Both the position numbers and the translations under genes were made by a program. Shown piece by piece: positions 4,001 to 51,602 of a stretch of DNA of 64,000 bases. How positions within the stretch are numbered: position 1 is the first letter of the stretch; each line of letters opens with the position of its first letter. Below the pieces are notes generated by a model, which was given only the letters and a program-made list of their open reading frames with translations, searched no databases and had not been told where the DNA came from. This DNA is from Botryllus schlosseri (lineage: Eukaryota): contig CM119376.1 of assembly GCA_051294905.1 (NCBI GenBank), forward strand, positions 29,264,001 through 29,328,000, written 5' to 3'.

Positions 4001-7000
4001 TAGGGTTGTTCAGAATTGACCGACTTTCAAAAAGTCCAGGTTTTCAGTCCGTTTCCCATGCCGTATACCTTAAAAACAAATTCTGGCAACTTTTTTTTGT
4101 AATTCATCCCCTGCATCCGTGTGCACATTGCCGTTTTCTCATGCACCTAAAAACTTCTTCGGAATTAGGGGATTCCCCCGTTGTCAGTGACTCGACAGGA
4201 ATGGCGTGTGTTCTCATTGACGTGACGCGTATGTTCTAGCGCTGATTAAGCGCTGAGCACGGCTGTGAAACGGGGATCATTGATTAGTCAGGTGCCTTGC
4301 TGCTTTGTTGTTGATGGACTGTGTTTACGATTGAGGTGCAGGACTTATCAGGCGGCATTTTGACTCGTGCTATTAGCGAGTTTAGCGCGTGATTAGTGAA
4401 CATAGTATTATAGCAGTATACAACTATTTGATATAATAGACCTGATACTCTTTTCCTTTCTACTAGGATAGAAACAAAGCTTGCAAATGTCCATTCCAGT
4501 GACTGGGGAAAACCGCCAGTCGGTTGCTCTAAATTTTTTGTTATATCCCAAGATATCAATATACTGGTATGAGTTTTTCCAATTTAGGAATAACTATCTT
4601 CGATAATCTATAACTGGATCTAATCTGGCTACTCCTGTGCAAGTTATGCAGTATGTGTTCGACCTAAAACTCTAAAGAACTGAAATGTTTTCCACTATTC
4701 TTTGTTGCTTGACTGAGTTTATGTATATCTGTTTTTCTAGGATTAGCTGTAGTGCGAAATGTCTGAAAAAAAAGAAAATCGTCATCTAGTGCAGCAGTAC
4801 CGAAGAAAACTAGAAGAACACGATCGCAGACACAACATTTCTTAGTTGGGCCATCTGAGGAAGCCATTACGGGATCGAAGTTGCCCACTCTGAGGCTGTG
4901 AGGCAAGTTATGCAATATGTGCTACACCTGAGAGAGCATTCATTTAAAAAAAATGAACCAGTCAAGTCACACATCCAGATCGCAGTAGATGAAGTGATCG
5001 GTTTTTGGTTACTTGCTGGCATAAAGACTATCACAAAAGTCAATGCCACTAAAAGATTGGGAACAGTGTGGAAACAATGGCTGTCACTAAAGAAAACTGC
5101 AGGCCGGCAATATGTATAAAAAAAACAAAGCGACTTTGAAGCCAAACTGAGTAAGCTATGGGATATAGGAGCCCTTGACGCGATAGCGACAATTGAAGCA
5201 AGTAGACTTCTTTCTGACGATAAAAAACGTGAAGACATAGCATTTTATCAGGATCAAAGGGGTCCGAGATTAGCAACGATCGGTGGCAAAGATAAAGTGT
5301 TGAAAGCGAAAATCATGCACCAAAAGAGACGGACCATGAGTGCAAGAGAGTCTGCACCAGCATCAAGTAGCGAAGGTGTATTTACAGAGAGCTCATCTAT
5401 ATCTTCACAGGTAGCTGACACTTCTCACAGCACTGATTTTGAACTTGCACAGTCGACATCTGGTCATTCCGCTAAATTTGTGACTCTAAAAGCTGTAAAC
5501 CTATTCAGCGACGAAGACCTATTCCAGGTTTTCGATCGCTTGAAAGTCAGTGATAATGCCGCTACCATGATAACTGCAGCACTGATTAAAGCTTGCGATG
5601 GCAACCCTAATGACTTCCATCTTTCGAGATCTGGGACCTATCGACGACACATTGCAAATCGTTTGAAAATTTCCGAATCTATCTTTGAAAAAATATCCAC
5701 CAATCCACCAGAGCACATTGCATTGCACTGGGATGGAAAGCTCACTAAGAGTCGTCTAGGATATCAATTTGAGGCCTTGGCAGTGCTCGCATCGTCTGCG
5801 TATTCCGGCGCATTTAAGAAAGGGAAACTTCTTGGCATTCAAACTCTATAAAGTGCTACAGGAAAAGCACAGGCTGATGCATCATTTGAACTGCTGGAAC
5901 TTTGGAATTTAACAAAATCTGTTAGAGCTCTTGTGTTTGTCACAACATCCTCAAACACTGGTAAAAACAAAGGTGCGGTTCCGTTACTTGAAGAATATAT
6001 TAACAGGAAAGTTTTCTACAATGCCTGTCGCCATCATATTTATGAACTGGTCATTCGAGAGGTTCTGAAGTGTTTGTTTGGATCGACAACCACAGGCCCT
6101 GAAAACACGGATTTTAATACCTTCAAGAAGAAGTGGAAACATATTGATGAATCAAGAAGCTATAAAACGCTGAAGTTTATTGAAGGCAGCTGGTTGGCGA
6201 TGAAAGCTGATGAAGCAAAGCAAGAAATAATTCCACTGATGAAACCCAATGATGGAAAGCAGAAAGAAGTCTTGATAAGAGATGACTACAGAGAATGTGC
6301 AACAGGCACCTTGGCGATTTTGGATGACAAATATGTTGATCATCGTTTTCGCAAGCCTGGTGTTACTCATAGCGCTAGATGGATTAGTCAAGTCCTGTAC
6401 TGTCAAAAAATGTTCATGTGGAGTGAGCAAATGGACTATTCTGAAGAGTTCATTGAAAAGTTGGAACGAATCAATACATTCATTGCTTTGTTTTATGTTC
6501 CAGCTTGGTTGAAAACTGGTATTGCATGTGACGCACCTTGGAATGATCTCAAATTCCTTCATGACATGAAAAACTTTTCATTATGCGATCTCACTGTTGC
6601 TGATGTGGCATACAAGAAATTGCGAAAACATCATTGGTATCTAACTGAGGAAATGGTGGTATTTACCATGTTCTCGGCTAATCCAAAGATTCCTGACAAA
6701 CTGAAGGAAGCAATGGCTGCTAAATTGATTAAAATGCCAATCCCTGAAAAATTTCGCAGAGGTATGCCTCTCAGTCTGATCTCTGACTCTGTCTCTGAGT
6801 CAATGAGTATGGTCGATTTGATTGGGCCAGAACCGTGGTTTCTATTTGATGCTATACATGTGGAACATGATTGGTTGAGTCTTCCAGTTTCGGAATGGCA
6901 TACTGATCCGGATTTCGTGACTGCTCAAGAATTTGTGAATACTGTTGAAGTAGTTATGATGCAGCAGAGCGTATGGTAAAATTGAATACCGACTATGCTG

Positions 7001-7742: not shown

Positions 7743-8100
7743 CATGAAAAAGGAGGACAAATCCTCCTAAAGGACGACATATGGTAACCCTGTCCTATCA
7801 AAACGCCGTAAGAAGAATAGGCCAGAGTGGGATTTTGATTGATTGCCCCCTCCTCTATTTTCTTTGTATCATTTTGAACCGACGAAATTCTCAATAATCT
7901 GAACTAAACTAAAAATTTATCATTGGAATGATGTTGACTTTGATGAGCCATAAACACCAGAGACAGTAAACCAAGCTATTGTATTCTGAAAGAAAAGGTG
8001 CGAAGGCAAAAGTATCTCTCGTGGCTCGTGTAGTAAATATTATTTTGCCGTGAAGCGTGTTGCATATTGTTTTTGTGGAAATAGCAGTCAGCTAACAGGG

Positions 8101-8988
8101 ATGGGTTGCGATGGAGGAACTATTCCGCGGAGACACGAACTAGTAAAAACCAAACAGAGAGGCGAACAGAAAGACAAAAACGCCGACATAGTGGCGAAAT
8201 GGAAACATTGCGCTCTTTCGAGCGAGCCTTTGAAGGAACCGATAGTCGCTTGCGAATTGGGTAAATTGTACAATAAGGACGCGGTTATCGAATACTTGTT
8301 GAACAAAAAAGCCGAGAAGAAATCAGAGATGAAACACATTAAAGGTTTGAAAGATATTCACACATTATCATTACACCGAAATCCGGCCTGGAAAAGTAGG
8401 ACGGAGAAGGCCGAAAAGGGTGACGGTTACATCGACGACCACGATTCGAAATACATGTGCCCGATCTCGGGAGTGGAAATGAATGGAAAACACAAATTTT
8501 GTTACTTAAGAAGCTGTTCATGCGTGTTAAGTCAGAGAGCTTTGAAAGAGCTCAGGGGTTCGGTTTGCGGAATCTGTTCGAAAGAATATTCAGAATACGA
8601 TGACGTCATTGTGTTGAACGGGGATAAGGAAGAAGTGGAGATATTGCAAAAAAAAATAGATCAACGCAGAAAAGACAAGAAATCACAAAAATCCAAGAAA
8701 AAAATGGAAACGAGTGAAAAAGAAAAAATCGAAAATCCCAAAAAATCTGATATTCCTACAAGTTCTGGAATGATGTCGACTGACACCTTTTCTAAGAAAA
8801 TCCCCGGACAAGGTACCGCTCAAAAGCTGGAGGTCTCGGGCACGTTGAATGGTGTGAAACGTAAAATGGAGGAAGATACGATTTATAAAACCGAGGCTTT
8901 CAAATCGATATTCACGTCGCACAACTCTGCGAAAAGATCGAAGAATCAGAAAGCTCACTGGATAACTTACAACCCGTATCATTGCTGA
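8101..8988 (+). CDS. RTF2: Replication termination factor 2, single exon, 295 aa
   Basis: Diagnostic N-terminus MGCDGGTIPRRHELVK, W..CALS.EPL.EPIVACELGKLYNKDAVIEYLL, CPISGVEMNGKHKF, and C-terminal AHWITYNP. Confidence 0.96.
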   Translation: MGCDGGTIPRRHELVKTKQRGEQKDKNADIVAKWKHCALSSEPLKEPIVACELGKLYNKDAVIEYLLNKKAEKKSEMKHIKGLKDIHTLSLHRNPAWKSRTEKAEKGDGYIDDHDSKYMCPISGVEMNGKHKFCYLRSCSCVLSQRALKELRGSVCGICSKEYSEYDDVIVLNGDKEEVEILQKKIDQRRKDKKSQKSKKKMETSEKEKIENPKKSDIPTSSGMMSTDTFSKKIPGQGTAQKLEVSGTLNGVKRKMEEDTIYKTEAFKSIFTSHNSAKRSKNQKAHWITYNPYHC

Positions 8989-9882: not shown

Positions 9883-11995
9883 ATGCCGTTGGTACTGATG
9901 TGTGGACATCCGTGTAGTGGGAAGACAACACGGTGCCGTCAATTGACTGAGTATTTAGCGGAAATTCATCCAGATGTGAAAGTCGTTGTCGTAGGAGATG
10001 ACAGCCTTGGAGTGGACAGGAATAATATTTATAATGATTCGAAACATGAAAAAGCAATTCGAGGATCGTTGAAATCGGAAGTCGACAGAAACTTGACAAA
10101 GGAAACGGTCGTCATTCTTGATTCGCTCAACTATATCAAAGGTAAGTTGATTGTGATTTATATAGCAGTGGCAAAAGCCTCTTCTCATTTAACTGATGCC
10201 GTCAACCATGGTAGGACTACACAATCGATCGAGGTATTGCAGACTCAAGAATATAATCCAAAGTAACAATCATATAATATCAAATTGCTCGAGACTCAGA
10301 ATGTACAATACCATAGGCGGGCAACTTCTACAGTCGACAGGCCTGATATGGGAAAATCAAGTACCTGACAGGCCGGACTCCTAAATCGTTACATTATTTG
10401 CGTATTTATCCACTTATAAAAGGAATAAATCGTATTAAATGTAAGCTTTAAGTTTAAAGTATGGAGACAAAAACAGTATTTCATGAATTTATTAATAGCT
10501 GTTGAAGTCAATTAGACATCTGTGGTGTGGTCGATCAAAGTCGTCAACAAGTTCTTTGAACTCTGGCTGCGTGCCGCTCAAAATCCTGTTGCGGGTCAGG
10601 TCCGGCACTTCTAACCACCTCCATGCACACATGATACAATGCTTTGTAATGAACAGATAGAAGGATGTCAAAAACGACGGAGGATGGGTATTTCAATATA
10701 ACATCCAACTCGGCCGAATGACCCATGTAACTTTGTGACAATCTTGATCAATGATCATCCGCTGTTCATTCGCTCTTCACTGGGTCTCTAGGCTTTAGAT
10801 TGGCATAGTGTGGGTTCCACAGTCAGCCCTAGTTAAGACTCAACTTACTGTACCCCTCCAAATGGCCTTGATACACCAAAGCTCGCTATATCAGGATAAT
10901 ATTTGATAAGTCAACTTGTTTGCGAAGTTCCAAATGCTCAACACTCAACAGACCATTGAAAGTGATCAGTCTTTGACTGCTGAGCTCACCATCGACCGAA
11001 CATAAATAGTAGCCTCTATGATGCTCGGGTAGAATGATATTGGCATGATCGAGGGTTGTAACCAAGTCATAAGGTTCCAAGTCATAAGTCAATCTCACTG
11101 TTATAGTTTTGACCCGAGTCAAGTCAAGTCGAGTCATTTTCGATTCACCACCGAGTCAAGTCCGAGTCCAAGAAGGTGTGTTGTGACTCGAGTCCGAGTC
11201 AAGTCATTATGTTCTCTGGTTTCAGTTAGCAGTGCTTGGGTTCCATGATAATGACCTAGTTCCCTTTTGATAGGATACTACTTTTTTACTAGCCTACACA
11301 TTGTTCCGTTACTCACTTACTTACTTACCGTTACATTGATGTTTAGTGGACCCGCGATTATAATTGAAATAGATATGTTAAATGCCCGAATGTGAACGCA
11401 AATTTGTGTTGTTCTAGGTTTCCGTTACGAACTATTTTGTGTCAGCAAATACGCACGGACGCCGCACTGCGTGATCTGCACCGAATCGTCAAAGGATACG
11501 ATACAAAGCTGGAATTCAGCTCGAAGTGACACTGAAAGATATCATGAAGAAATCTTGGATGAGCTGATGATGCGGTTCGAGCCTCCAGATTCCAGCCATC
11601 GTTGGGATTCTCCATTATTTACAATCCAACAACAAGATGCTTTGCCAGCGAGAGACATTTGCGACGCTCTCTTTCACAAAAAACCTCCAAAGCCGAACAT
11701 GTCGACCCAAAATCCGCCTCTCCGAGAAACGGATTACTTGTACGAGGTCGACAAAAAGACGCAGCAAATCGTTTCGAGTATTTTAGCGTCTCAAAAATCG
11801 ATGTTAATCGGAGATCTGGTTTCAGTTCCAGGCACTGCAGAGAAATATTGCATCACGCAAAACTTGACTTTGTCACAATTGCGGAGGTTTAGGCAACAGT
11901 TTTTGACCTACGTGAAAACGGGGACTACGACAAAAGTGGACGATATTCCGAAAACGTTTTTGCTGTTTCTTAACAAGTGTATCGAATCTTGTTAG
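9883..11995 (+). CDS. KTI12: KTI12 homolog (Elongator-associated P-loop protein). Exons 9883-10141 and 11418-11995, 278 aa
   Basis: MPLVLMCGHPCSGKTT P-loop. VILDSLNYIKG|FRYELFC is joined across a phase-1 GT-AG intron. RFEPPDSSHRWDSPLF motif. Confidence 0.95.
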
Positions 11996-23807: not shown

Positions 23808-24757
23808 TTACAGTCCAGACTTGATTTTGAAACCCTGACCATACAGTTCTATCTCAACCTGACATGCAACTAGCGAATTTCTTTTAACGTGAAACTTGTA
23901 AACATTTGACTCCTGTTCCGTTTGCCAGACGCAGGTCTCAATCACGTTGCTCATCAAGAGTTCGCTGATGTAAAGCAAAGACATTCTCCGAATTTTATGA
24001 TCCAATAAGGAACCTTTTTTTCCGAACGTCGTAGCAGCAAATGCGTCACCCAAGCAGTCGTAACAAAGATTTGCGTAAACCGCCTGATTAACATGATTGT
24101 TACGATCGGTTTGTGATGCACTGATTTTGCAGACGCTAGTAAAAATTCTGCCGTCATATGGCAGACACGGATATTCTTTCTGGCATTGAGGAGCACTTCG
24201 CTGTATTTTATAACGCTGTGCACATCTCTCAGGTGTGAAATATCTAGTCAATGACTGTGAAAAAGCAGTCGGGCGTCTAGTTGCGGGATCGATATTCACT
24301 CTCAAAACTGAGGACAGTAGTAGCACATCTTTGGTATTGTGATCCACGACAGTATCTTCTAAGAATTGAGACGATTTTCCGATTGGTAAAAGTTGATGAT
24401 GTAATGTGATTTTTCGATTTATGAAATCTATGTAAGAGCCACCCTCTTGGGAATCGGTGGTTTTATAATAAAATTGCGGCAGGATTTCGATTTGTTGCCA
24501 CTTTATAAAAAACATGTTCTGATAACTCTCTTCGGCTTTGTCGGCGATATCTTGCGTGAGTTTGGCAGCCGACGCTCGAGCGCTTTCACACATCTTCAAG
24601 ATTGAGTGTGGCGATGTTTGCCCTGCCAAAATACACTCTTCAGCTCGTTTCTTCGAGATTATATTGATTGGCGGAACTTACCTCCGCCGATGATACTTCC
24701 GTAGTTCAAATGTTGCATTGTGATTTCACAATGAGCATCTCCGTATTGTATTTCCAT
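23808..24757 (-). CDS. Acyl-ACP/acyl-CoA thioesterase-like double-hotdog protein, paralog 1. Exons 24757-24682 and 24622-23808, 296 aa
   Basis: SQTDRNNHVNQAVY resembles the FatA/FatB-type DxNxHVNN motif, followed by Y-x-x-E. 59-bp phase-1 GT-AG intron after codon 25. C-terminus KIKSGL. Confidence 0.8.
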
Positions 24758-25101
24758 GACGCTTTATAAGTTTCAGGGCTAGCATGAACAAGAGCCCTTT
24801 GGTTAATAAATTATATTTTCTAAGAAATTATTTTCTGTTGGTAAATCATCACAATTTACAAATAAATCAAAAACAATATGAAACTTGAAATAATCTGGTT
24901 GGACGGGGACGTAGCTTACACATCATAATTCATAACCTTCGGAATATCATAAATTTTGTAATACAATTGACATTACAAATGTAATTTGTGGATATTTTAC
25001 TTCATTCCATTTTCATTTAAATACAATACCGGTACTCACAAACCAAATTGTAGGGAATCCATACAGAAGGGCATTCCATCTATTACAAATTGGTACAAAG
25101 A

Positions 25102-25477
25102 TAGGGTTACCATATTTTGGAAATCTGGACACTTCCAAAAATTTTCAAATATACAATACTGGAGTAAAATCGTAAAAAATGGATAATTTTTCCCGACTTT
25201 GTGGCTGGTTGACTAAAAAAAGGTAATTTTTCAGACTCGGCTCCAGAAATTCACACTTTCACTAAAAAAAAAGGTCAAGTTGCATGCTCAGCTCCCAAAA
25301 TAGCGGCCGCAGCGTTACTTCAATGCTGATTTAATGTATATCAGTCGAATTTTACCCTATATTTAACCAAAATTTTCAAAAAAGCGGACAAAATCCCCAA
25401 AAAAAGGACAGTTGGACGTCCTCCGAGGACACTTTCAAAAGAGTCAAAAAAGGGGACGTATGGTAGGCCTAACCCTA
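25102..25477. mobile_element. MITE family E (TIR TAGGGTTACCAT) with a 6-bp insertion in the right TIR
   Basis: Flanks TACAAAGA / TACAAAGG (7/8). Fragments of the same end occur at 7781-7792 and 17848-17859. Confidence 0.75.
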
Positions 25478-25951
25478 TACAAAGGTGACCCAGTATATCA
25501 TTCAATATAAATTGCAGTAAATTGCCAATTGAAAACTCTCAAAAAAAAGCATAGAAATTATGATTGCTCCATACCTCATCACAACAAAGTATTAATGTGA
25601 CATAAAGAATCAAAATGAACATTGATGGGGTTCTACAATAATAAGGCACATAATTATGAAAAAAAAACTAGTGATAATAGGAGAACACATTATCTATGCG
25701 GCATAGTCAAATCACATACAGAATATATTCAAAGAGGCAAAAATGAAATGTTATAGAGTACAGTACACACATGAAACAAATTAGGGACCGATAGATAAAC
25801 CTTCCTCGCCCACTAGTAGGCCTATAGATCTTATGAATAATATATTCACACATAATATATTCGCACAAATTGACATACAGTTGGCCGACATGATTAATTG
25901 GCAAGTTTCGCTATGTTGCATGAGTTACAAATGCGATTTCATGGAATTCTC

Positions 25952-26876
25952 TCATGGAAATAGCTCAATTTCCACCTGACACACGATGACCGAGCCCTTT
26001 TTCACATTAAACTTGTAGACTAATGGGTTTGCATCATCTTGCCAAACAAAAGTATTAATTTTATCTCTGTAAACGACCTCATTCAGAAATAGAAATGACA
26101 TTCTGGAAATTTCATGGTCAAGAATTGAACTAGTTTTGCCAAATGCAGATTTAGCGAACGCTTCCCCTAAACAGCTGTAGCAAACATCAAGAAAAGAAGC
26201 TTGATTCGCATGATTATTTGCGTCGAGTTGGCGGATATTTATTTGACATTCATTCATGAACATTTTATCTTCACTGGGTTGACATGGAAACAAACATTGA
26301 CCAGCGAGTCTCATTTCTTGCGGAATTTTTATGTGCTTTACACATTTTTGAGCTGTGTAGTGGTCTTTGAAGGACAGTGGAAATGGTTTTGGGCGTCTGG
26401 TAGTCGGGTCAACATTGACATTTAGAAGTGTTGCGATAAATAATGGGGATTCATTTTCAAGGTCAAAAGCAGTCACTTCTCGTAATTGAGATGAATTCCT
26501 GATAGGTGAACAGCATACACACAGTTTAATCTGCCTATTTACCAAATCTATGTAAGAATGTAGACTGGAGGGGTCAATCTTTTTGTAAAATTCTGGCAAA
26601 ATTTGAATTTGCTGCCACTTCAAAAAAATTGTTCTGCTGGCTTCATCTCCGTGTACCGGTAGAGTTCTGTCGATACGATATATAGAAGCATTGCCAAATT
26701 CAACGAACTTGAGGATCGAACGAGGAGATATCTGTTCTGAAATGTCACGTAATTTCTAATGAAAACGACTGATGAAAATAAAAAATACACCAAATCTCAC
26801 TTCCTCCGATGATATCTCCGTAATGAAAATGCTTTATCGTGACTTCACAATGTGTGTCCCCTGTTTTCACTTCCAT
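25952..26876 (-). CDS. Thioesterase-like paralog 2. Exons 26876-26801 and 26736-25952, 286 aa to the UGA stop
   Basis: RQLDANNHANQASF motif and the same phase-1 intron (64 bp). Roughly 70% amino-acid identity to paralog 3 by eye. Confidence 0.8.
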
Positions 26877-29205
26877 GGCACCAGATTGTAGATCAGTTCT
26901 GCGTAATAGAGTAAATGAGTTTGCACTAGCAATCGTAATTCTTACCCCGGTAGACCCAGAATTGCACAAAATGGTCAACATTTGACTGTTTCTGATTGAA
27001 GTTCATGTGAAAATACTGTTGGTACTCTATGTCAGCGCTATACCATTGAAATTGTAGAAGTATGTTTGAAATTAAAAAAACTATTTCCACTTGACCTGTG
27101 TTGCTGTAGCACTGCAAGTTCTTGCACGAGATAAGTAGTTTATGATACTATGATGTAGTTTGTTAGTTGATGGTTTCTGGCAAACTTATATGCCTGGTAG
27201 GCATAAACTAATATTTATTTTTAACTTGTAGTACGGAAGAAGGTTCCAGTTGGTGCCTGAGCTTTGTGCGAAGTATTATATATATATAAGAATGATATAA
27301 ATTAAAAAGATATAAACTCATCTATCGAGTATACGCATTATTATAGAGCCAACAGTGTGAAGCTGGAATTTATAGGACTGCTGCAGTGTTTTTCTGCTAG
27401 GTTCAATCAGCTCGGAAGCAGATGTCGAACCTATGGTATAGAAATGAGTAGATTTGGTGTGAGTTGACGGTTGATTGCAACGTAACACATAAGTAATGTT
27501 TTTTGGTGCATGCATTGGCAGATAAATGCATTTCTCACGCTCTATCTTACTCTAGCAGCCATTGAAACGCATTCTATATCTTAATGCCTATAACAGCAGG
27601 AATTCACCGAAAATGAAGTACTTACATCTTCTAGTTTTCCTATGAAAACTTTCAGCCAGTTTGACCAATTCCTACTACATCAAAAGTCAGACTTGAAGCA
27701 ATAATAATGTAGGCCTATCGGTCATTATAACATGATTCTGAAGCAACAAGAATTCAAAAATCATAAATATGGCACACATAAACATTGAACTTCTATCAAC
27801 AGCGATAAATCAGGAATGAAGATGTTGGCAACAATTATTTCGTCTAAAAGTCAATGTGACACAACTCACAAGGCTTCTTTATGTTATGTGCAAAACCACA
27901 TATATCATATAGGTTGCAGTAACCAAGCCAGCAATGCACATGAAATGGAATGTACTCAACGCGCATCTCAGATGAACATTATAAATGATTGCAGAAATGT
28001 ATTTGCTACTTTTATCTCATTAGTGTTGCATGCACATTGTACAATGTACATGCCCCCTTGAGATAATAATTTACATTGTCTTAAAAAGAATTTGCTGGCG
28101 AATCATCACAATTTATAAACATATCAAACTTGAAATATAATCTGGTTGTACATACAGAGGACTACATCCTTATAATTTGTAATCCAATAACTTTGGTCAA
28201 GATGGCCAATTGGTAATAATTCTAATATTACAAAAGTAAGTTGCGTATATTTCACTACATTCCATTTCCATTTATATACAATTCCCACAAAACAAATAAT
28301 ATTGAATAAATCAATCAGGGCGAAAAGCATTGATTTCGTTTAATAGCAAATTAGTTTAAAGGTAACGCAGTACAGCATTCAAAATAAAGAGAAGTATGTT
28401 TTCAAAAAAATAGCACAAAGATAGCAGATTGCCTAACACTTCATAACAACAAAGTGATTAATATTACTGTAGTCAAAATGAAGATTAATTGGGTTATCCT
28501 AAAGACCACTGTAAAGTCGACTCAATCTAAACCAACACGGACAGTAAGTTGATAATAATGTGGTCACTATATAGACTGGGGACATCAGACTTGGACAAAC
28601 CATTCATTTAGTTAGTTGACAGTCAACTAACCAACAGCTTTTTGAGTAGTTCAAGTTGTGGATATTGAAATTTCAGTAGTTCTAGTTTCACATTTGATAA
28701 AAATATCAGTTGCCAAACAGCTAGAAAACATGTGTCGTCGTTTTATGTGAATCGAGATTCCGTTGAATGTTTGTGCTCTGCGCAGCCATCGCTAGCTTAT
28801 AGCCATCGCTACTAAAAGTGGCGTAGCCAGAGGGTGGGTATTTGGGGTCGATATCTCTCCCATTTCAAACAGATAACACTGTCCTTTGAAATGTAGACTA
28901 TACGTCTGATATTTCGAATAAAATAATAATAATGTGTTGCCTCGGAGAATGAAATCCAGTTCAGTACGGGTCTAACATTTATTGGCTGAAGGTAGTTAGT
29001 TCTAGTTCTGGCTCTAGATGTGGCTTTTGAAAAATGAGTAGTTCTAGTTGCAGATTTTTAAAACTGAGCAGTTCTAGTTTCAGTTCCACTTGCCGTTTTG
29101 AAAATCCCATAGTTTGTACAAGTCTGGGGGACATATCAATATCACTACAGTATTGAAAAATCAATTGAAGAATATACTCAAAGGAACGAGATTGATAGTT
29201 TACAG

Positions 29206-29819
29206 CATTGGTTCTCAAACTGAGGGAGGCCTTGGGGGCGTGAAAGCATCTGAGGGGAGGCGCGAAGCTGCCTGAGAAAAATGATGTTTCTTGAACTAGG
29301 AATAAGTTTAATTTGTGCCGAAACATACAATTTTCAACAATGGCAATAATCCTGATTATATTTCGATTTTAAATGTTATGAATTGGTCGTACCATCCACA
29401 CACTGATGTTAGATTTTGACTGATACTGAACCTTGCGGTAATCAGAAGATGTCCGTGAATGAAGTATAACTGATCACGTACGTTTGAGGCGTTGAGCTAA
29501 GCTCAAGTGGGGGGATAGATTGAATTAGGCACCAAAATAGTTAAAATATCTATGTACCACGTGCTATCATTGCACATGATTCAATATTCAACTAGGAATT
29601 TTTTCGCGCACTGCAGGATTTGAATCTGGCTCATAATTATTGCTGTGTTTAGTCCGAATATACCATTTTTGAGAATTGTCTTAACAGCCATAACACCGTC
29701 CATGCCACGAAGCAATGCAATGGTTCCTCTTTTTAATATTTTATGATATGACGATAAGGGGGCGTGACATTTTTCACTAACATCAAGGGGGTGTGTCGAA
29801 AAATGTTTGAGAACCACTG
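29206..29819. mobile_element. Buster-type hAT MITE (family A variant)
   Basis: CATTGGTTCTCAAAC...GTTTGAGAACCACTG with perfect TSD GTTTACAG. Confidence 0.88.
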
Positions 29820-29955
29820 GTTTACAGGGTAAAGTACACACATGACAGTGATTAAGAACCGAGAGATAAAATTTCAATACCCACTATCATAAATTTTCTG
29901 GCGGAAATTGACACGCAGTACACAATTTCTTAAAACATTGCTCTTCTTGACTGTG

Positions 29956-30911
29956 TTACAAATGCGATTTCCTGGAATTCTCCTGTGCAAATAGCTCAAT
30001 TTCAACCTGACACACGATCACCGAGCCTTTTTTGACATGAAACTTATAAATCAATGGATTCGCACCATCCTGCCAGACAAAGGTAATAATTTTGTCCATG
30101 TAGTTTGCCTCGTTGAGATAAAGAAATGACATTCTGGAAATTTCATGATGAAAAATCAAACCGGTTTTGCCAAATGCTGAGTTAGCAAACGCTTCACCTA
30201 AACAGTTGTAGCAAATTTCAGCATAAGCAGCTTGATTTGCATGATTATTTACGTCAATTTGACGGATATTTATTTGATATTCATTCACAAATATTCCATC
30301 TTCATTGGGTGGACATGCAAACAACGATTGCCCACGCAATTTCATTTCCTGGGATAATTTTATGCGTTTCTGACATTTTTCAGCTGTGTAGTGGTCTTTC
30401 AAGGACTGAGGAAATGGTTTCGGTCGTCTGGTAGTTGTGTCAACATTGACCGACAGAGCGGTTGCGATGAATAATGGAGATTCACTTTTAAGATCAAAAA
30501 CCATCACTTCACGCATTTGAGACGAATTCCTAATTGGCAGACTGCATACACGCACCTTCATTTGCCTATTCACCAAATCTATATAAGAAGGTGGACTAGA
30601 GGGTTCAATCTTATTTTTGTAAAATTCCGGCAAAATTTGAATTTGCTGCCACTTGAGAAAAACTGATCTGATGGCTTCATCTCCGTATACCGGAAGAGTT
30701 CTGTTGATCAGATGTACAGCAGAGTTGCCAACTTCAATCGCCTTGAGGATGGAATATGGAGATATCTGTTCTGAAATCGTAATTTCTTATGAAAACTGTG
30801 CAACTTATGAATATCAAAAATACACTGAACCTTACTTCCTCCGATGATATCTCCGTAATGAAAATGCTTTATTGTGACTTCAACATGCGTGTCCCCTACT
30901 TTCACTTCCAT
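29956..30911 (-). CDS. Thioesterase-like paralog 3. Exons 30911-30836 and 30770-29956, 296 aa
   Basis: RQIDVNNHANQAAY motif and the same phase-1 intron (65 bp). C-terminus ENSRKSHL is a PTS1-class signal. Confidence 0.82.
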
Positions 30912-33900
30912 GGCACGAAATTGTCAATCAGTTCTGCATGCAATAATCGTCATTCCCAACCTAATTGACTCGGAACTACACACACATTTTACCATTTCTG
31001 AATAAAGTTTGACACCAAGTTATGTAAGATGTCGTTAGTACCCTAGATCACGGTTTTTCAAACGGCCTCAACTTCAGATAGCTTGCAAGGGTATACATTG
31101 ATGGGCCATCACCACAGTGGTTAAGACATAAATTAAAAACTCAACATCATAGTCTGTAAAAGTTAGTAGTTTCGTATATGATCCTTGCAGTTTTGCTATT
31201 ATGCTGCATGTGTGGTTTGTCGGTATCTGATTTGTACGAAGCTTACATGCATTGCAGCGAGTTGAGTACATGACGTCATTGTCAGATCTGGAAACCTCAT
31301 GCCAAACATGACCAACATTTACTGGTACTCAGTCGGCGAGTTATTCTACGTCACTGCATGAGGACCTTCATTCTTCACATAAGCACAAAATTTCAATACA
31401 AGCATGGGAAATATTCTTCATAAAAATCTTTTTTGTGAATAGGTCCTCTTTGAAAACTAGATGATCTCTGTCCGATGCTTTGTCTTACAATAGCAATTGG
31501 CAGGGTTGACCGAGCAAAGACTCGATTCACGATTTTTTAGCGAATCGAGTCGTTTTTTTCAAATCCGTTAAGTGACTCGAGACTAGGACAGCCTGGACAG
31601 ACATTTCATTGTAACTTTGAAGAATAGTAAAATCACCACTTGGAAAATAGGACCAGTAACTGTTAGGACTGAGGAAAATTACGATATTATGAATGAAAGC
31701 CATTCTATATCAGTTGAGCAGAGTCGAAAAAAAGTTTGTCTAAACCAGTGGTTCCCAACCTTTTTCGACCCATCGCCCCCTTTTCAAGGTTATCACCGAT
31801 CATCGCCCCCCAAATTTTGTGTACCGAAAATTGGGCATACAAACTGTAATCACCGGCGGGTTGACTAAAATAAAAAAAAAAGGTCAAATTTTCGGCTCTA
31901 TGTCTAATCATCATTGGTTTATTATCAATTTTATCAGTTCAATACACCACAAAAAATGCGATACGAAGAAAAGAAAGGAAGATGTCGAAGTGACTAGGAG
32001 TTGTCTATGGAACCGGACACCCACCTTGGCCTAGGCGATGTAAAGAGGAGGCATGCACACTGAATGAAAGTAAAGAAGATAGTATAGAAAAAGGAAGCGA
32101 CAAGAAATAGGGCGGCATGTCATGGGAAGCGAGATCGATTTGTCAGTCGTGGTCCGGTAATCTTGAGGATGAACTGTATTTATTTAGTAGTAATTGCTTG
32201 TATTTCGACTTGAATGTGGACATGTTCGTCGACTGCCGGATGTTCAAATTGGCATTGTTCTAAACAATCGCAGCGACGCAGCACAATGACCATAACAATG
32301 GCCCTTGCGTGGTTGCGATTGTTCAGAACAATGCCGATTTTCAGACTTTGAGGTGTATTTCAAGGGGGTTCCATTGCCCCAATTAGATTTTATTGTATAT
32401 TTTCGGAATCAGTGCGACAGTAGCTTTCAAATAAGATCAACTTCATTGAATTTAAGCACGTGGGTCGTCAGCTATGGGACTAGCAATTATGTTGAGTTCA
32501 GATTGCTGAGCAGTAATTCCCTCCGGGCAAGCAAGCGTGACGACGGGTGTTGCGTATCTATCCGTAGGTTAGTTATCTATAGTATATTCAACCTATTGAC
32601 TGCACACTAAACATACATAATCCACTAGCTGTAAAACAACTGTTTCTGATCTGTAAAACATGGAGAGTGCTCCAGTTCCAGTGGATGGATGAGATGCTTT
32701 CTGCATGCCCATTATTTGAAAGAAATGTAGGATAGGGCATATGTACCACCTCAGCTAAAAAAACACCTATTGCATGTCTGTCTAATTACACGGTCAAGTT
32801 TAAACTTGAATTCATAGGACCGCTGTAGCGTTTTTCTGCTAGGTTTGATCAGTGTGGAAGCAGATGTTGAAGCGATGGCGTAGCAATGGCTGCCCACTGA
32901 CTCCAGCAAATTGGGTATGAATGAAATGACATGTAGCGCAATTTTAACGTCACCAGAAAGCGATTAAGCACCACCGCTGTAAATGCTCATTGCTCAATCT
33001 TAGTCTTGCTTGCATTGAAACTTCCTTAATCTCTATCCAGAAAGCAAAGTACTTACATCTTCCGCTTTTCCTACAACACCTTCCCGGCAGTTCGGCCAAT
33101 TCCTAACTACAATAATATGAGAGTCAGTTTCAGACAAAATGTAATTAAAGAGATGATTCTAAAACAAAGATTTTATACAATTTATGATAAATACCATGGC
33201 ACACATAAATACAGAACTTCAAGCAAAAGCAAAAATATGTCGACCAATTTGATTTTGGCAACAAACATACTGTACAAAAGCAAATGCTTCAAGATTTTAG
33301 GCGCCAAAGACAATGGAATACAGCGTACAGCAGCCAAAATTGAATTCATAGAGTGCGCAAAGTAAAATGTACTATAGAGGCGTCACATGAGAGCAGCAAT
33401 ATGGCAGCGATGTATTTGTTACTATATATTTGGCGTGGGGCCTATAATTCAATACAAGCTGCCTCAATTTACTGGAATAGGCAAGCCACCCGTGTTCAAA
33501 ACCAACTTCCATAGCTAGTTGTACTGTCACGCTTATGATGGCAAAATGTCTTTCCTATAATCAATGTCAGTTCGAAAAACATTCATGTTATCATAATCTA
33601 AATTAGGATTTGATTTTTTCCTAGGGTTTATCTATGTAGACTAACCTGTAACATAGAATTCCTCCGGCGCAATAATTAAATAATACTATCGATAAACATA
33701 AAGTAAATAGGTAAATTACATATGACCATGTCAAACATAACTAAGTTATTAAAATTCCAGACAGGGAACATGTAGATATATTGTACAATGTAGTTGACAT
33801 TTCTATAAACAGTCTTGAGGTCACTTCTTGAAATATATGAAAGCTATTCTATGCCAGGAACATGCGACCGTTGCACACAACACCGTTTAGTGACCCCAAC

Positions 33901-39156: not shown

Positions 39157-40539
39157 TTATTCAACTTTCTTTTCCAATTTTTGACTACTCTTCATAGCAT
39201 AACGAACTTGCAGCAAAAGCCACATAACAATGTAAAACAAGTGGCCATAGTAAAACATCTTCATATAGATGGGTGCGTATAAACGCCATTTCCTAAGAGA
39301 AAAATCTAGCAGACAGTACCCGAACAGCAATCGAACGTAGACAAAGCCACACAGATGACCAATCCACGACGTAGATTTTGATGAAAATATACTTTGCACA
39401 AGCTTTGTTTTTCCGAGTTCCTCACGAAGTGGACGTTCCACAGTCATGACCAGAAATTCGTACGCAAAACATGTGAAATAACCTTCATGATAGCCGTGCC
39501 AGAGTGCTAAAAACATCAACGTTGTTATATGAGACACTTTGCGGTTACCAAGAAAACGCAAACGTTTGAAAACGTAACGAGCGACCCACTGATTAGTATT
39601 AATGTTAAACGCTTCAATCAGATGTTGAAAGCTGTTGCAAAATATGTATTTCCTCAGTTTAACATTTCTCACGGCATCCCACTTATTTTTGCCATCTTGC
39701 TTGTAATAACCAAGGCCTGATAATATACAGACTCCTTCGTTAATCATCCATATCGCGACGTACTGCGACAAAAGAATGTGACCTCGCAAACACACTACTC
39801 CGGCTATGTTTAAAAATCCAGAATCTAGGAATCCAGGTTCAAGAAGCGTGCTTTGTGGCATTGCTGCGTCACAAATCAACTGTAGAACGAGGACAAATGT
39901 CCCAGAAAGACAGCGACGAAACGCCGGGACTACAGATCGAGGTCGCTTTCCAGGGTTATCGGATAATTCTCCGGAAACCATTTGGCGAAATCTTCGAATT
40001 GGAAACTGTGGGCCGACGTTAAAACCTCCGTAATAGTAACAAAATCCAAACATTTCCAGTAAACCCGGAATATCGTTTATAAGCAAAGTCTTTTGCTCGG
40101 CAGAGACACCTTTTTCGTCACGATGTCCGTCGTAAATATCCCAACAGAGTCCAATCAATCTCAAAGTTAGTATGCAATGAGCCATAGTCCAATTGACATC
40201 ATAATCTTGAGTGGCCGAAGAGACATACCCAAGAGTGAGGTAAGTCAACTGAAACGCAAACGAAACTCCGACACATAGAGCTCCTGTTCCTACAATTTTA
40301 AACAACAGCCATTGAGTCGTAATGCATATCGCCGAGTGTATAATCCCGTTCCCGTACAACCAGTGAATCAATAGCGCTCCGATTGCGGTAAAAAACGCAT
40401 TCTGGATTCGAGGATCTTTGGCGAAGAGAAATCTTCGGTGGATAGTCCCAAAAATATATCCCAGGTACACGGTGAGTAGTAATTTGACGGCGTTCACAGG
40501 AACGCCGAATTGATCAGCATAATCGGTGACGAAAGACAT
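39157..40539 (-). CDS. LPCAT3: Lysophospholipid acyltransferase 5 / LPCAT3 (MBOAT), single exon, 460 aa
   Basis: FNINTNQWVARYVFKRLRFLGN and LALWHG with the catalytic His, multiple hydrophobic helices, and a C-terminal KKVE ER-retrieval motif. Confidence 0.94.
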   Translation of the reverse strand: MSFVTDYADQFGVPVNAVKLLLTVYLGYIFGTIHRRFLFAKDPRIQNAFFTAIGALLIHWLYGNGIIHSAICITTQWLLFKIVGTGALCVGVSFAFQLTYLTLGYVSSATQDYDVNWTMAHCILTLRLIGLCWDIYDGHRDEKGVSAEQKTLLINDIPGLLEMFGFCYYYGGFNVGPQFPIRRFRQMVSGELSDNPGKRPRSVVPAFRRCLSGTFVLVLQLICDAAMPQSTLLEPGFLDSGFLNIAGVVCLRGHILLSQYVAIWMINEGVCILSGLGYYKQDGKNKWDAVRNVKLRKYIFCNSFQHLIEAFNINTNQWVARYVFKRLRFLGNRKVSHITTLMFLALWHGYHEGYFTCFAYEFLVMTVERPLREELGKTKLVQSIFSSKSTSWIGHLCGFVYVRLLFGYCLLDFSLRKWRLYAPIYMKMFYYGHLFYIVMWLLLQVRYAMKSSQKLEKKVE

Positions 40540-40631
40540 CGTTTTCACGTTAAATGCAACGAAAATCTAGCGACCTTGAAACGAAGCAAATTTGAACGTT
40601 AGTAATGCCATTGTGTCTGGACAAAAGACAG

Positions 40632-49814: not shown

Positions 49815-51602
49815 ATGACACGATTCACGAAATGGCAGAGAGAAGTCTCAGACGCCGTCAGCTGGCATCAAGATCAAGCTCTTTCCGCCACCATCTTTCT
49901 ACTCCGAGAAACGGGACCCACAAGTTTTGTATTGGAGGAAGAAAATTCCGAAAAACGAGTACGAGTCAGCCTCGGAGATCCTCACACTTGCACTTGCGAC
50001 GTGTTCCGAAGAGAAAACAACCCGTGCAAGCATATTTGCTGGATAATTCTAAGGAAATTTAAGTGGCCAAGAAACAATGATCTTGCGTTTCAACACGGTC
50101 TCGTGGAAAGAGAAATAAATTTACTTTTGCAAGGCCCTCGGAACTCTACAAGGAGAACAAACGCAAGCCAACAAGACAACGCGAAAAATAAACAGAATTT
50201 AGATAAACCAGGGACTTTGGAACAGAGGCAGATAACTAATGTAGATGTGTGTCCGATTTGTCAAGAAGAACTACTCACTAAACATGCCCCCGTGACATAC
50301 TGTAAATTTGGTTGTGGAAATAGCATTCATATCAAATGCATGAAGGTCTGGGCGGAGCATCAACGCAATACTTCGCAAGATAACGAAATCAAGTGCCCTA
50401 TTTGCCGAGCATCTTTTGGGTCTTACTACAAACTTTTGGAAGAATTGAGAAATTCATCGGAAGAAAGTGATTCTGGATTTGACATCCATTTTTCAACCGT
50501 ATGTACGGGCTGTCAAATGTCTCCCATCAAAGGAAAGTGTTATAAATGCGTTTCTTGCGACGCGACTTTTCTATGCAACACTTGTTTCCACGGTAATAAG
50601 CACAGACAACACTCGTTCGAATTTCGATTAAAACGATGTCATCGCTGGCGTCAGGCTAAATCTAGACATAATAATTCCGGTTTGGAGATTGCGATACAAA
50701 ACGATCTTGGCGCACGTGAAATCACCGATGCAGATTACGATCTCCTTTTACAGCTGGACCAAGATTCCCAACAATCTTCTCAGACTGTAGATTTAAGCGG
50801 TTTACCACTACATATCATAAATTCGTTGCCTCTCAAAAAAGTCCGCGCCGGTGCCAAATTACTACAGCCTGGCCGACAATGCCGTCTGTGTTTGCACAAA
50901 TACGAACTTGGCCAGTTTGTGCGTATGCTGCCAGACTGCAAGCACATTTTCCATAAAGATTGCATCGATACGTGGCTTTCTGAAGATCACAGACGATGTC
51001 CGGTAGATCAAAAACTGGTCACAGTGTATCGAAGGCCTGCGTCCAAGCAAGAAAGTCCCCAAACACTCAATCATTCTTCCGGTGACACTATGGAACTAAT
51101 GGTTCCTGGAGTGGGTATCGCTAAGTTACAGAAGTCTAAAAACGATGACTCAAAGTCTGAACGTTTTATTGTCCATGAATTATCCCGAAAAATTAGGAAA
51201 TCGAGCAGTAATGCTAGCAGAAGATGGCATCGAACTAATTCCTCTTCAAATTTAACTACCAAACGAGATAGACATCATGAATTCAATGATAATTCAATCG
51301 ATTCCGCATCATCTCTACCATTCAATGAAGAATGTGGCGAAGATTATCACGCGGCAGATCCGTATAGCATTACGAGGGAATTGTCTGGAATTTCTGTCCA
51401 TGAAATGTTGAATACGATAGATGACGTTTTACCTGCAACGAGAGAACGTTCCCGAAACACGACTAAAAGTCGGATAGAAAAAGGTTTGGTTAGCAGAAGG
51501 AATAACGAACACCTGTTAGTTGCCCGTGTCAATAGTGCCAACGCAAATCCAGGACTCTGGCTGCAAGGAAGTTCGATAGGCCAGGAAGAGAATGATCTTT
51601 GA
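49815..51602 (+). CDS. ZSWIM2: E3 ubiquitin ligase ZSWIM2/MEX (SWIM, RING, ZZ, RING), single exon, 595 aa
   Basis: SWHQDQAL..IFLLRETGPT.F.L; SWIM CTC..PCKHICW; RING CPICQEE..CGNSIHIKCMKVW; ZZ CTGC..GKCYKC; RING-H2 CRLCL..CKHIFHKDCID. Confidence 0.95.
   Translation: MTRFTKWQREVSDAVSWHQDQALSATIFLLRETGPTSFVLEEENSEKRVRVSLGDPHTCTCDVFRRENNPCKHICWIILRKFKWPRNNDLAFQHGLVEREINLLLQGPRNSTRRTNASQQDNAKNKQNLDKPGTLEQRQITNVDVCPICQEELLTKHAPVTYCKFGCGNSIHIKCMKVWAEHQRNTSQDNEIKCPICRASFGSYYKLLEELRNSSEESDSGFDIHFSTVCTGCQMSPIKGKCYKCVSCDATFLCNTCFHGNKHRQHSFEFRLKRCHRWRQAKSRHNNSGLEIAIQNDLGAREITDADYDLLLQLDQDSQQSSQTVDLSGLPLHIINSLPLKKVRAGAKLLQPGRQCRLCLHKYELGQFVRMLPDCKHIFHKDCIDTWLSEDHRRCPVDQKLVTVYRRPASKQESPQTLNHSSGDTMELMVPGVGIAKLQKSKNDDSKSERFIVHELSRKIRKSSSNASRRWHRTNSSSNLTTKRDRHHEFNDNSIDSASSLPFNEECGEDYHAADPYSITRELSGISVHEMLNTIDDVLPATRERSRNTTKSRIEKGLVSRRNNEHLLVARVNSANANPGLWLQGSSIGQEENDL

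Follow-up and report, generated by a model that had tools for sequence, protein, structure and literature searches.

Thioesterases of the FatA/FatB type have a textbook role in fatty acid synthesis, both in plastids and in bacteria. Oil engineering makes heavy use of them and herbicides are directed against them, and to our knowledge they are not regarded as enzymes of animals. The plant FatA/FatB proteins and the bacterial acyl-ACP (ACP, acyl carrier protein) thioesterases (PF01643 + PF20791; PDB entries 5x04, 9hrr, 2ess, 2own and 4gak) consist of one chain of ~250-300 residues with two hotdog repeats, and carry a catalytic Asp-x-Asn-x-His loop together with a Tyr-x-x-Glu motif in the C-terminal repeat. 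Here we describe three adjoining genes of this kind, A, B and C, on the minus strand of a 64,000-nucleotide stretch of the ascidian Botryllus schlosseri (assembly GCA_051294905.1, contig CM119376.1, positions 29,264,001 to 29,328,000; hereafter the window, with positions counted from its first letter). Our reading, to which we assign a probability of roughly 70%, is that the trio are tandem paralogues of an old bilaterian FatA/FatB-type clade, a peroxisomal acyl-CoA hydrolase family whose members lose or mask their peroxisomal tag after duplication.

Gene structure of the trio

The genes span 23808-24757 (A), 25952-26876 (B) and 29956-30911 (C) and follow one plan, with two exons, the second of ~270 codons, separated by a short GT-AG intron. 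Exon 1 comprises 25 codons plus one base in all three, which places the intron in phase 1. The features are as follows:

24682-24757, minus: gene A exon 1, from the ATG, 25 codons + 1 base
24623-24681, minus: gene A intron, phase 1, GTAAGT..GGCAG, 59 nt
23808-24622, minus: gene A exon 2 and stop codon; protein of 296 aa, C-terminus KIKSGL, a non-canonical tail
24084-24107, minus: gene A D-x-N-N-H motif, DRNNHVNQ
23961-23972, minus: gene A (Y/F)-x-x-E motif, YISE
26801-26876, minus: gene B exon 1, 25 codons + 1 base
26737-26800, minus: gene B intron, phase 1, GTGAGA..TTTCAG, 64 nt
25952-26736, minus: gene B exon 2 and TGA (25952-25954); protein of 286 aa, C-terminus EIELFP, without peroxisomal signal
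25925-25951, minus: in-frame stretch 3' of the gene B TGA, ENSMKSHL + TAA
26201-26224, minus: gene B D-x-N-N-H motif, DANNHANQ
26078-26089, minus: gene B (Y/F)-x-x-E motif, FLNE
30836-30911, minus: gene C exon 1, 25 codons + 1 base
30771-30835, minus: gene C intron, phase 1, GTAAGG..TTTCAG, 65 nt
29956-30770, minus: gene C exon 2 and stop codon; protein of 296 aa, C-terminus SRKSHL
30232-30255, minus: gene C D-x-N-N-H motif, DVNNHANQ
30109-30120, minus: gene C (Y/F)-x-x-E motif, YLNE

An earlier note, made from the sequence, had described three paralogues with a phase-1 intron after codon 25, a shared D-x-N-N-H-(V/A)-N-Q, a downstream (Y/F)-x-x-E and aligned tails KSGL / (KSHL) / KSHL. The exact exon borders agree with this description, both motifs are located in A, B and C, and the tails are as given: A ends KSGL, C ends KSHL, and B has KSHL behind its TGA. 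The B and C proteins are 74% identical and their introns 85%, while A is 42-43% identical to either protein. With six-frame search E-values of 3e-130 and 2e-62 between the paralogues, paralogy within the trio is far above chance.

By eye, the sequence YGCAG/AACTGAT is kept in B and C, exactly 22 nt before the ATG (minus strand, 26899-26902 and 30934-30937). It could act as a 3' acceptor site, either for splicing of an intron in the 5' untranslated region or for the spliced-leader trans-splicing that ascidians commonly use.

Fold and active site

The trio are members of the acyl-ACP thioesterase (FatA/FatB, TE14) double-hotdog family, as seen from both sequence profiles and structure searches. 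The Pfam domain Acyl-ACP_TE_C (gathering cut-off 21 bits) scores 21.1, 18.1 and 19.1 bits in A, B and C, 32, 28 and 24.3 bits in the relatives P0002, P0010 and P0004, and 27-31 bits in sister copies of the same genome. With a profile built from seven paralogues, Umbellularia FatB (5x04) is found at E 1e-4, and a 13-sequence profile finds the Bacteroides enzyme 2ess (1.8e-8) and the Chlamydomonas FAT (3e-6). An NCBIfam search of the trio gave no meaningful match, and the 4HBT_3 and Acyl_CoA_thio profiles (PF13622 and PF02551; TesB/ACOT8-type) did not match the trio. The N-terminal repeat is recognized through structure only.

Each trio protein is predicted to be one chain with two hotdog repeats. 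An AlphaFold (AF2) model of C exon 2 has a pLDDT (predicted local distance difference test) of 73 and a pTM (predicted template modelling score) of 0.76, and its top 44 matches in the PDB are all acyl-ACP thioesterases (E 2.6e-14 to 2.4e-9). In Swiss-Prot, the top 11 matches are plant FatB or FatA, and the nearest human and mouse entries (ACOT9, ACOT7 and ACOT11) are far poorer fits. P0002, a full-length orthologue 53% identical to A, was modelled with 68 homologues to a pLDDT of 92 and a pTM of 0.90. It superposes on 33 acyl-ACP thioesterase entries with Z-scores of 23.6-21.9 over ~240-256 residues at a root-mean-square deviation of ~3 Å. In this model the exon 1 part supplies strands one and two of the N-terminal hotdog (residues 4-7 and 11-16), and the final 11 residues have no regular structure. 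The double hotdog fold, without which the family assignment of the earlier note would have failed, is thus found in both models, and both superpose on FatA/FatB.

Other double hotdogs also align with the P0002 model, including LnmK (Z 19.6), ACOT7 (Z 18.5) and 2-enoyl-CoA hydratase 2 domains (Z ~17). Since LnmK and the hydratase domains cover most of the model, the fold could in theory serve another chemistry, such as that of an LnmK-like acyltransferase/decarboxylase or a hydratase. We see only a slim chance of this, because acyl-ACP thioesterases rank higher in every structure search and are the only family matched by sequence profiles, and because the thioesterase catalytic residues are kept in 152-157 of 159 sequences.

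The catalytic centre proposed for FatA consists of D262, N264, H266, N269 and E300, with N269 acting via its backbone amide (PMC12713704). Both motifs of the trio lie in the second, C-terminal repeat. HMM (hidden Markov model) alignments place the D-x-N-x-H of the trio on DVNQHVNN and its Y-L-x-E on YVAE of 2ess, in line with the earlier note's use of DxNxHVNN plus a downstream acidic residue as a mark of FatA/FatB. The position of FatA Asn 269 is a glutamine in the trio. Over the 159 aligned family sequences, Asp is conserved in 156, His in 157, Glu in 152 and Asn in 106, and all four are kept in A, B and C. Judged from these sequences, the conservation of the active site is the pattern of working enzymes.

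Distribution of the family

An exhaustive HMM search over 1.84 billion representative proteins returned 439 matches at E <= 1e-3, 86 of them at E <= 1e-10. All matches with a named source come from animals, and almost all of these carry the label 'uncharacterized'. The named relatives come from the ascidians Styela clava (consecutive loci on one chromosome) and Ciona intestinalis, three species of Branchiostoma (amphioxus), the echinoderm Acanthaster planci, and the molluscs Mercenaria mercenaria, Potamilus streckersoni and Arion vulgaris. They include:

Styela clava: LOC120339910-914 and LOC144427293
Ciona intestinalis: LOC100180199
Branchiostoma: C3Z045, C3Z046 and C3XSG3
Acanthaster: LOC110990185
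Mercenaria: LOC123559889

In the ESM Atlas, the neighbours are eukaryotic clusters of 707, 114 and 85 members, with Mollusca the most common source. A word-index homologue search gave no match for copy C, and with the 13-sequence profile just three proteins were matched. One high-scoring metagenome match (P0014) was considered as a close prokaryotic relative and rejected, as its contig is gene-poor and eukaryotic-looking.

In a maximum-likelihood (ML) tree of 76 rows, the trio falls in a 17-row clade with Styela and close relatives (support 95), within which B pairs with C (support 99). The adjacent clades are made up of amphioxus rows and of starfish-type rows. This is an old invertebrate family that is widespread rather than special to the locus. 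The domain is already annotated in databases on predicted proteins of amphioxus and oyster, so that the presence of the family in animals is no dramatic surprise. Full-text searches of the literature on acyl-ACP thioesterases in metazoan, horizontal gene transfer, peroxisomal, PTS1 (peroxisomal targeting signal type 1), tunicate, mollusc and related contexts found no paper on an animal member. With no characterized animal family in either protein names or literature, the earlier suspicion that this is not a characterized vertebrate family stands.

The earlier note spoke of a tandem trio. The three paralogues do adjoin, but they are not alone: a six-frame search of the same assembly (495 Mb, 219 contigs) gave seven additional matching stretches, which represent at least six extra copies. 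The contig of the window holds four or five of them, ~95 kb downstream, and another contig holds two:

contig 6, 29386777-29396747: loci L004-L006, L009 and L010, further paralogues
contig 13, 8452887-8478514: loci L007 and L008, further paralogues

Most of these copies are intact. The copy formed by L004/L010 has a frame break between its two ORFs (open reading frames) and the C-terminus KSVL; its exon 1 (MEVKIGNVHCEVVTQHLDYGTITGG) is laid out like those of the trio. In the remaining copies the chain stops right after the last β-strand, without a tag. In the ML tree these untagged copies form a separate subclade with one foreign sequence (support 100), and loss of the tag therefore predates that split.

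Styela clava (L020, OZ123520.1, 3228348-3252101) and Branchiostoma floridae (L021, CM022901.1) each have a pair of family members no more than 10 kb apart. Tandem arrays are thus the rule in this family and not special to the window.

Age and descent of the genes

The position of the intron was followed by mapping RefSeq proteins of Styela, Ciona, Branchiostoma and Mercenaria back onto their genomes. In Styela, a phase-1 intron follows codon 25 exactly as in the trio, although it is 2.9 kb long. Ciona has a phase-1 intron in the codon preceding HFNP (the equivalent of QISP in the trio), Branchiostoma has one in the codon preceding QISIW, and in Mercenaria the phase-1 intron is one residue further from the corresponding proline. 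An intron conserved in two ascidians, amphioxus and a clam means that the gene plan predates the chordate ancestor, and it probably predates the protostome-deuterostome split.

These data bear on whether the trio are old animal genes at all. Their nearest characterized relatives are bacterial and plant enzymes, and the first word-index search gave no homologue, as would be expected after a recent bacterial transfer or an assembly contamination. We give this explanation next to no weight. All three copies have GT-AG introns, the phase-1 intron recurs in the four genera above, and the named relatives belong to four animal phyla, with ascidian, amphioxus, starfish and mollusc clades that are each coherent. 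The neighbours in the window are ordinary ascidian genes, and even the best metagenome match lies on the gene-poor, eukaryotic-looking contig described above. The shared intron, cited in the earlier note as an argument against contamination, has become a stronger one through its conservation across phyla. It excludes contamination or recent transfer and is silent on an earlier origin of the gene; any bacterial transfer would have to precede the protostome-deuterostome split. No signal of the ancient bacterial origin suggested in the earlier note emerged from the analyses made here, which did not put it to a proper test.

The peroxisomal targeting signal

We searched for strict PTS1 tripeptides, defined as [SAC][KRH][LM], and for relaxed ones, which are close variants such as SNL, SSL and SKI. 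Among the 150 best relatives, 60 end in a strict PTS1 (SKL in 25, AKL in 15, SRL in 11, SHL in 4, and others), compared with 0.4 expected from amino-acid composition, and 31 more end in a relaxed one. All amphioxus and all starfish-clade rows of the tree end in SKL or AKL. Within the clade, a PTS1 tripeptide borne on an unstructured tail is both the most frequent C-terminus and the ancestral one.

Within the trio the picture is mixed. Copy C ends in the canonical tripeptide SHL with a lysine at position -4 and agrees with the consensus. Copy A, with SGL, deviates from it by a glycine at the middle position, and copy B as terminated ends LFP, with SHL only behind the TGA. The earlier description of the family as probably peroxisomal is supported, but among the three copies the consensus tag is carried by C only. 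The accompanying suggestion was of diversification in substrate or location, and that of location is visible in the tags: one canonical tag, one cut off by a stop codon, one altered to SGL, and a whole sister subclade without any. Copies of this family appear, from their C-termini, to lose the PTS1 tag repeatedly after duplication.

The genome has matches to Pex14_N and Peroxin-3 above the Pfam cut-offs, and peroxisomes are therefore expected in this animal. It also has a separate 4HBT_3 (ACOT8-type) match on another contig, so that the trio would add to an ACOT8-type enzyme and not replace it.

The mixed state of the tags allows a different view, in which the proteins are real thioesterases that are not peroxisomal, the SHL and SGL tails being incidental, and act in the cytosol or mitochondria, for example by unloading acyl chains from the fatty acid synthase ACP. 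Mammalian thioesterase II, an unrelated enzyme, does free acyl chains from this ACP. Consistent with such a role, two of the three trio copies, six more copies in the genome and the Ciona homologue lack a consensus PTS1, and the characterized relatives act on acyl-ACP. However, incidental tails would not account for 60 strict signals in 150 relatives where 0.4 are expected, or for the uniform SKL or AKL of the amphioxus and echinoderm clades, and the tail is flexible in the model. We consider this view unlikely for the family, although it may hold for the untagged paralogues, where it complements a peroxisomal reading and does not replace it.

Copy B

The TGA of copy B lies nine codons ahead of the old stop, and the frame behind it is open to a TAA that corresponds to the stop of C. 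The 24 sense bases behind the TGA match the tail of C at 23 positions, and beyond the common TAA the similarity collapses to 19 of 60 bases. Selection for readthrough, considered as the cause of this conservation, is unconvincing, because the preceding 60 nt are also 85% identical to C and the significance is marginal (P ~0.04).

The TGA is premature relative to C, neither AATAAA nor ATTAAA occurs within 400 nt downstream of B, and the sister copy L004/L010 has a frame break. B, and perhaps A, could accordingly be a decaying pseudogene in which the TGA is merely a disabling mutation. This is improbable, since several features of B are those of a functional gene. The ratio of nonsynonymous to synonymous substitution rates (Ka/Ks) between B and C is 0.28 (dS 0.51, 858 sites), which means that purifying selection has acted on both copies during most of the period after their duplication. 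The 286 codons of B are free of further stops and of frameshifts, all four catalytic residues (Asp, Asn, His and Glu) are in place, and the stop removes only residues past the last strand of the fold. There are also RNA reads over B exon 2.

These reads come from four raw RNA-seq runs of the species that were aligned to 25850-30960 (genes B and C). B exon 2 is covered at 1-3x depth in one run (X19), very few reads fall on C, and no splice joints were reported from the four runs over this interval. Support for splicing comes instead from related species, in which short contigs carry uninterrupted 299-aa ORFs (L011 and L012), and from the RefSeq models in Styela and Ciona. No variant at the B stop is listed for run X19.

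At four positions of B exon 2 (26054, 26351, 26353 and 26423) all covering X19 reads differ from the assembly. The X19 reads on this exon are mostly 95-99% alike and partly aligned, which suggests a divergent allele or individual.

We read copy B as presumably a mainly cytosolic derivative of the family. Peroxisomal isoforms of LDHB and MDH1 arise via stop-codon readthrough in the leaky context UGA CUA (PMC4359377, PMC4207609). As in copy B, their PTS1 lies in frame right behind a UGA stop, where in LDHB and MDH1 it is functional, but the stop context of copy B is UGA GAG. Readthrough of the B stop, or import together with a partner, is a possibility.

Proposed function

If the family assignment and the tags are taken together, the trio enzymes would hydrolyse acyl thioesters, and the members bearing a PTS1 would be imported by PEX5 into the peroxisomal matrix. 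We know of no ACP in this matrix, and the substrate of the tagged members would therefore be acyl-CoA. By splitting it into CoA and free fatty acid they would adjust β-oxidation, alongside the ACOT8-type enzyme of the genome. The duplicated copies would change their address, with C (SHL) peroxisomal, B, cut short by its TGA, mostly in the cytosol except where readthrough of the stop or a partner brings it into the organelle, and A (SGL) weakly targeted or not targeted.

Several points count against this account. The Pfam scores of B and C lie slightly under the gathering cut-off, the N-terminal Pfam domain Acyl-ACP_TE (PF01643) has no match in the trio, the N-terminal region giving only a sub-threshold match to 4HBT_2, and the margin in Z over LnmK and ACOT7 is just 2-5 units. 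A consensus PTS1 is present only in C within the trio. RNA support in the species is thin (the 1-3x coverage without splice joints described above). The plant and bacterial relatives use acyl-ACP, and the use of acyl-CoA is deduced from location alone; no activity, substrate or localization is on record for any animal member.

We propose a broader history tentatively, as one with somewhat poorer than even odds. In it, the bilaterian ancestor would have had a peroxisomal FatA/FatB-type acyl-CoA enzyme that was kept, and often much multiplied, in molluscs, echinoderms, amphioxus and ascidians, apparently lost in vertebrates, and re-addressed after each duplication by loss of the PTS1. Copy B could then have two addresses, through low-level UGA readthrough or as a heterodimer with C.

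The locus shows that ascidians carry many genes of the FatA/FatB type, and that a family found in several invertebrate phyla keeps the catalytic centre and bears a peroxisomal address. Should our reading prove true, the animal peroxisomal proteome would gain a new enzyme class, and there would be a natural example of the FatA/FatB fold working on acyl-CoA. Tandem copies with the tag intact, masked by a stop or lost would then provide a clean system for the compartment change of duplicated enzymes.

Other genes in the window

The other neighbours of the trio are ordinary animal genes:

39157-40548, minus: LPCAT3 (MBOAT5), intronless, a single uninterrupted ORF of 463 aa
34833-37889, minus: LNX-like protein with RING, TRAF-zinc-finger and four PDZ domains, 1018 aa, a long single-exon ORF
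49815-51602, plus: ZSWIM2 (SWIM + RING), 595 aa, a long single-exon ORF
8050-8988, plus: Rtf2, 312 aa, a long single-exon ORF
11471-11995, plus: KTI12, C-terminal part, a long single-exon ORF

The LPCAT3 protein is 63% identical to that of Styela clava, ~50% to those of Phallusia, Ciona and Clavelina, and ~40% to those of vertebrates, which puts the window in an ascidian and not a vertebrate, with Styela as the nearest of the named species. At 5297-6979 on the plus strand, two adjoining ORFs of 184 and 348 aa have no Pfam match and are possibly one gene or the remnant of a mobile element.

Comparison with known systems

The closest relatives of the trio are the uncharacterized invertebrate proteins, which have profile E-values of 1e-71 to 1e-14, share the two-exon plan with its phase-1 intron, and for the most part have a PTS1 at the C-terminus. 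Their identity to the trio is 20-53%, and they are on record as automatic predictions only.

Among characterized enzymes, the plant and bacterial acyl-ACP thioesterases are the best structural matches and the only sequence-profile matches. They likewise have two hotdog repeats in one chain of similar length and the same catalytic motifs, although sequence identity is just 10-17% and the spacing from His to Glu is ~10 residues longer in the trio. Unlike these enzymes, the trio is found in an animal host and has a conserved spliceosomal intron. Unlike the plant enzymes, its family has no plastid transit peptide and carries a C-terminal PTS1 instead.

ACOT8/PTE1 (TesB-like, 4HBT_3) is also a double-hotdog thioesterase with a PTS1, which in the mammalian protein is SKL, and it provides the role that we propose for the tagged copies of the trio family. 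It belongs to a different hotdog family, however, and the trio has no Pfam match to 4HBT_3. The family described here is thus set apart from the known FatA/FatB kind by its peroxisomal tag, and hence probably by the use of acyl-CoA.

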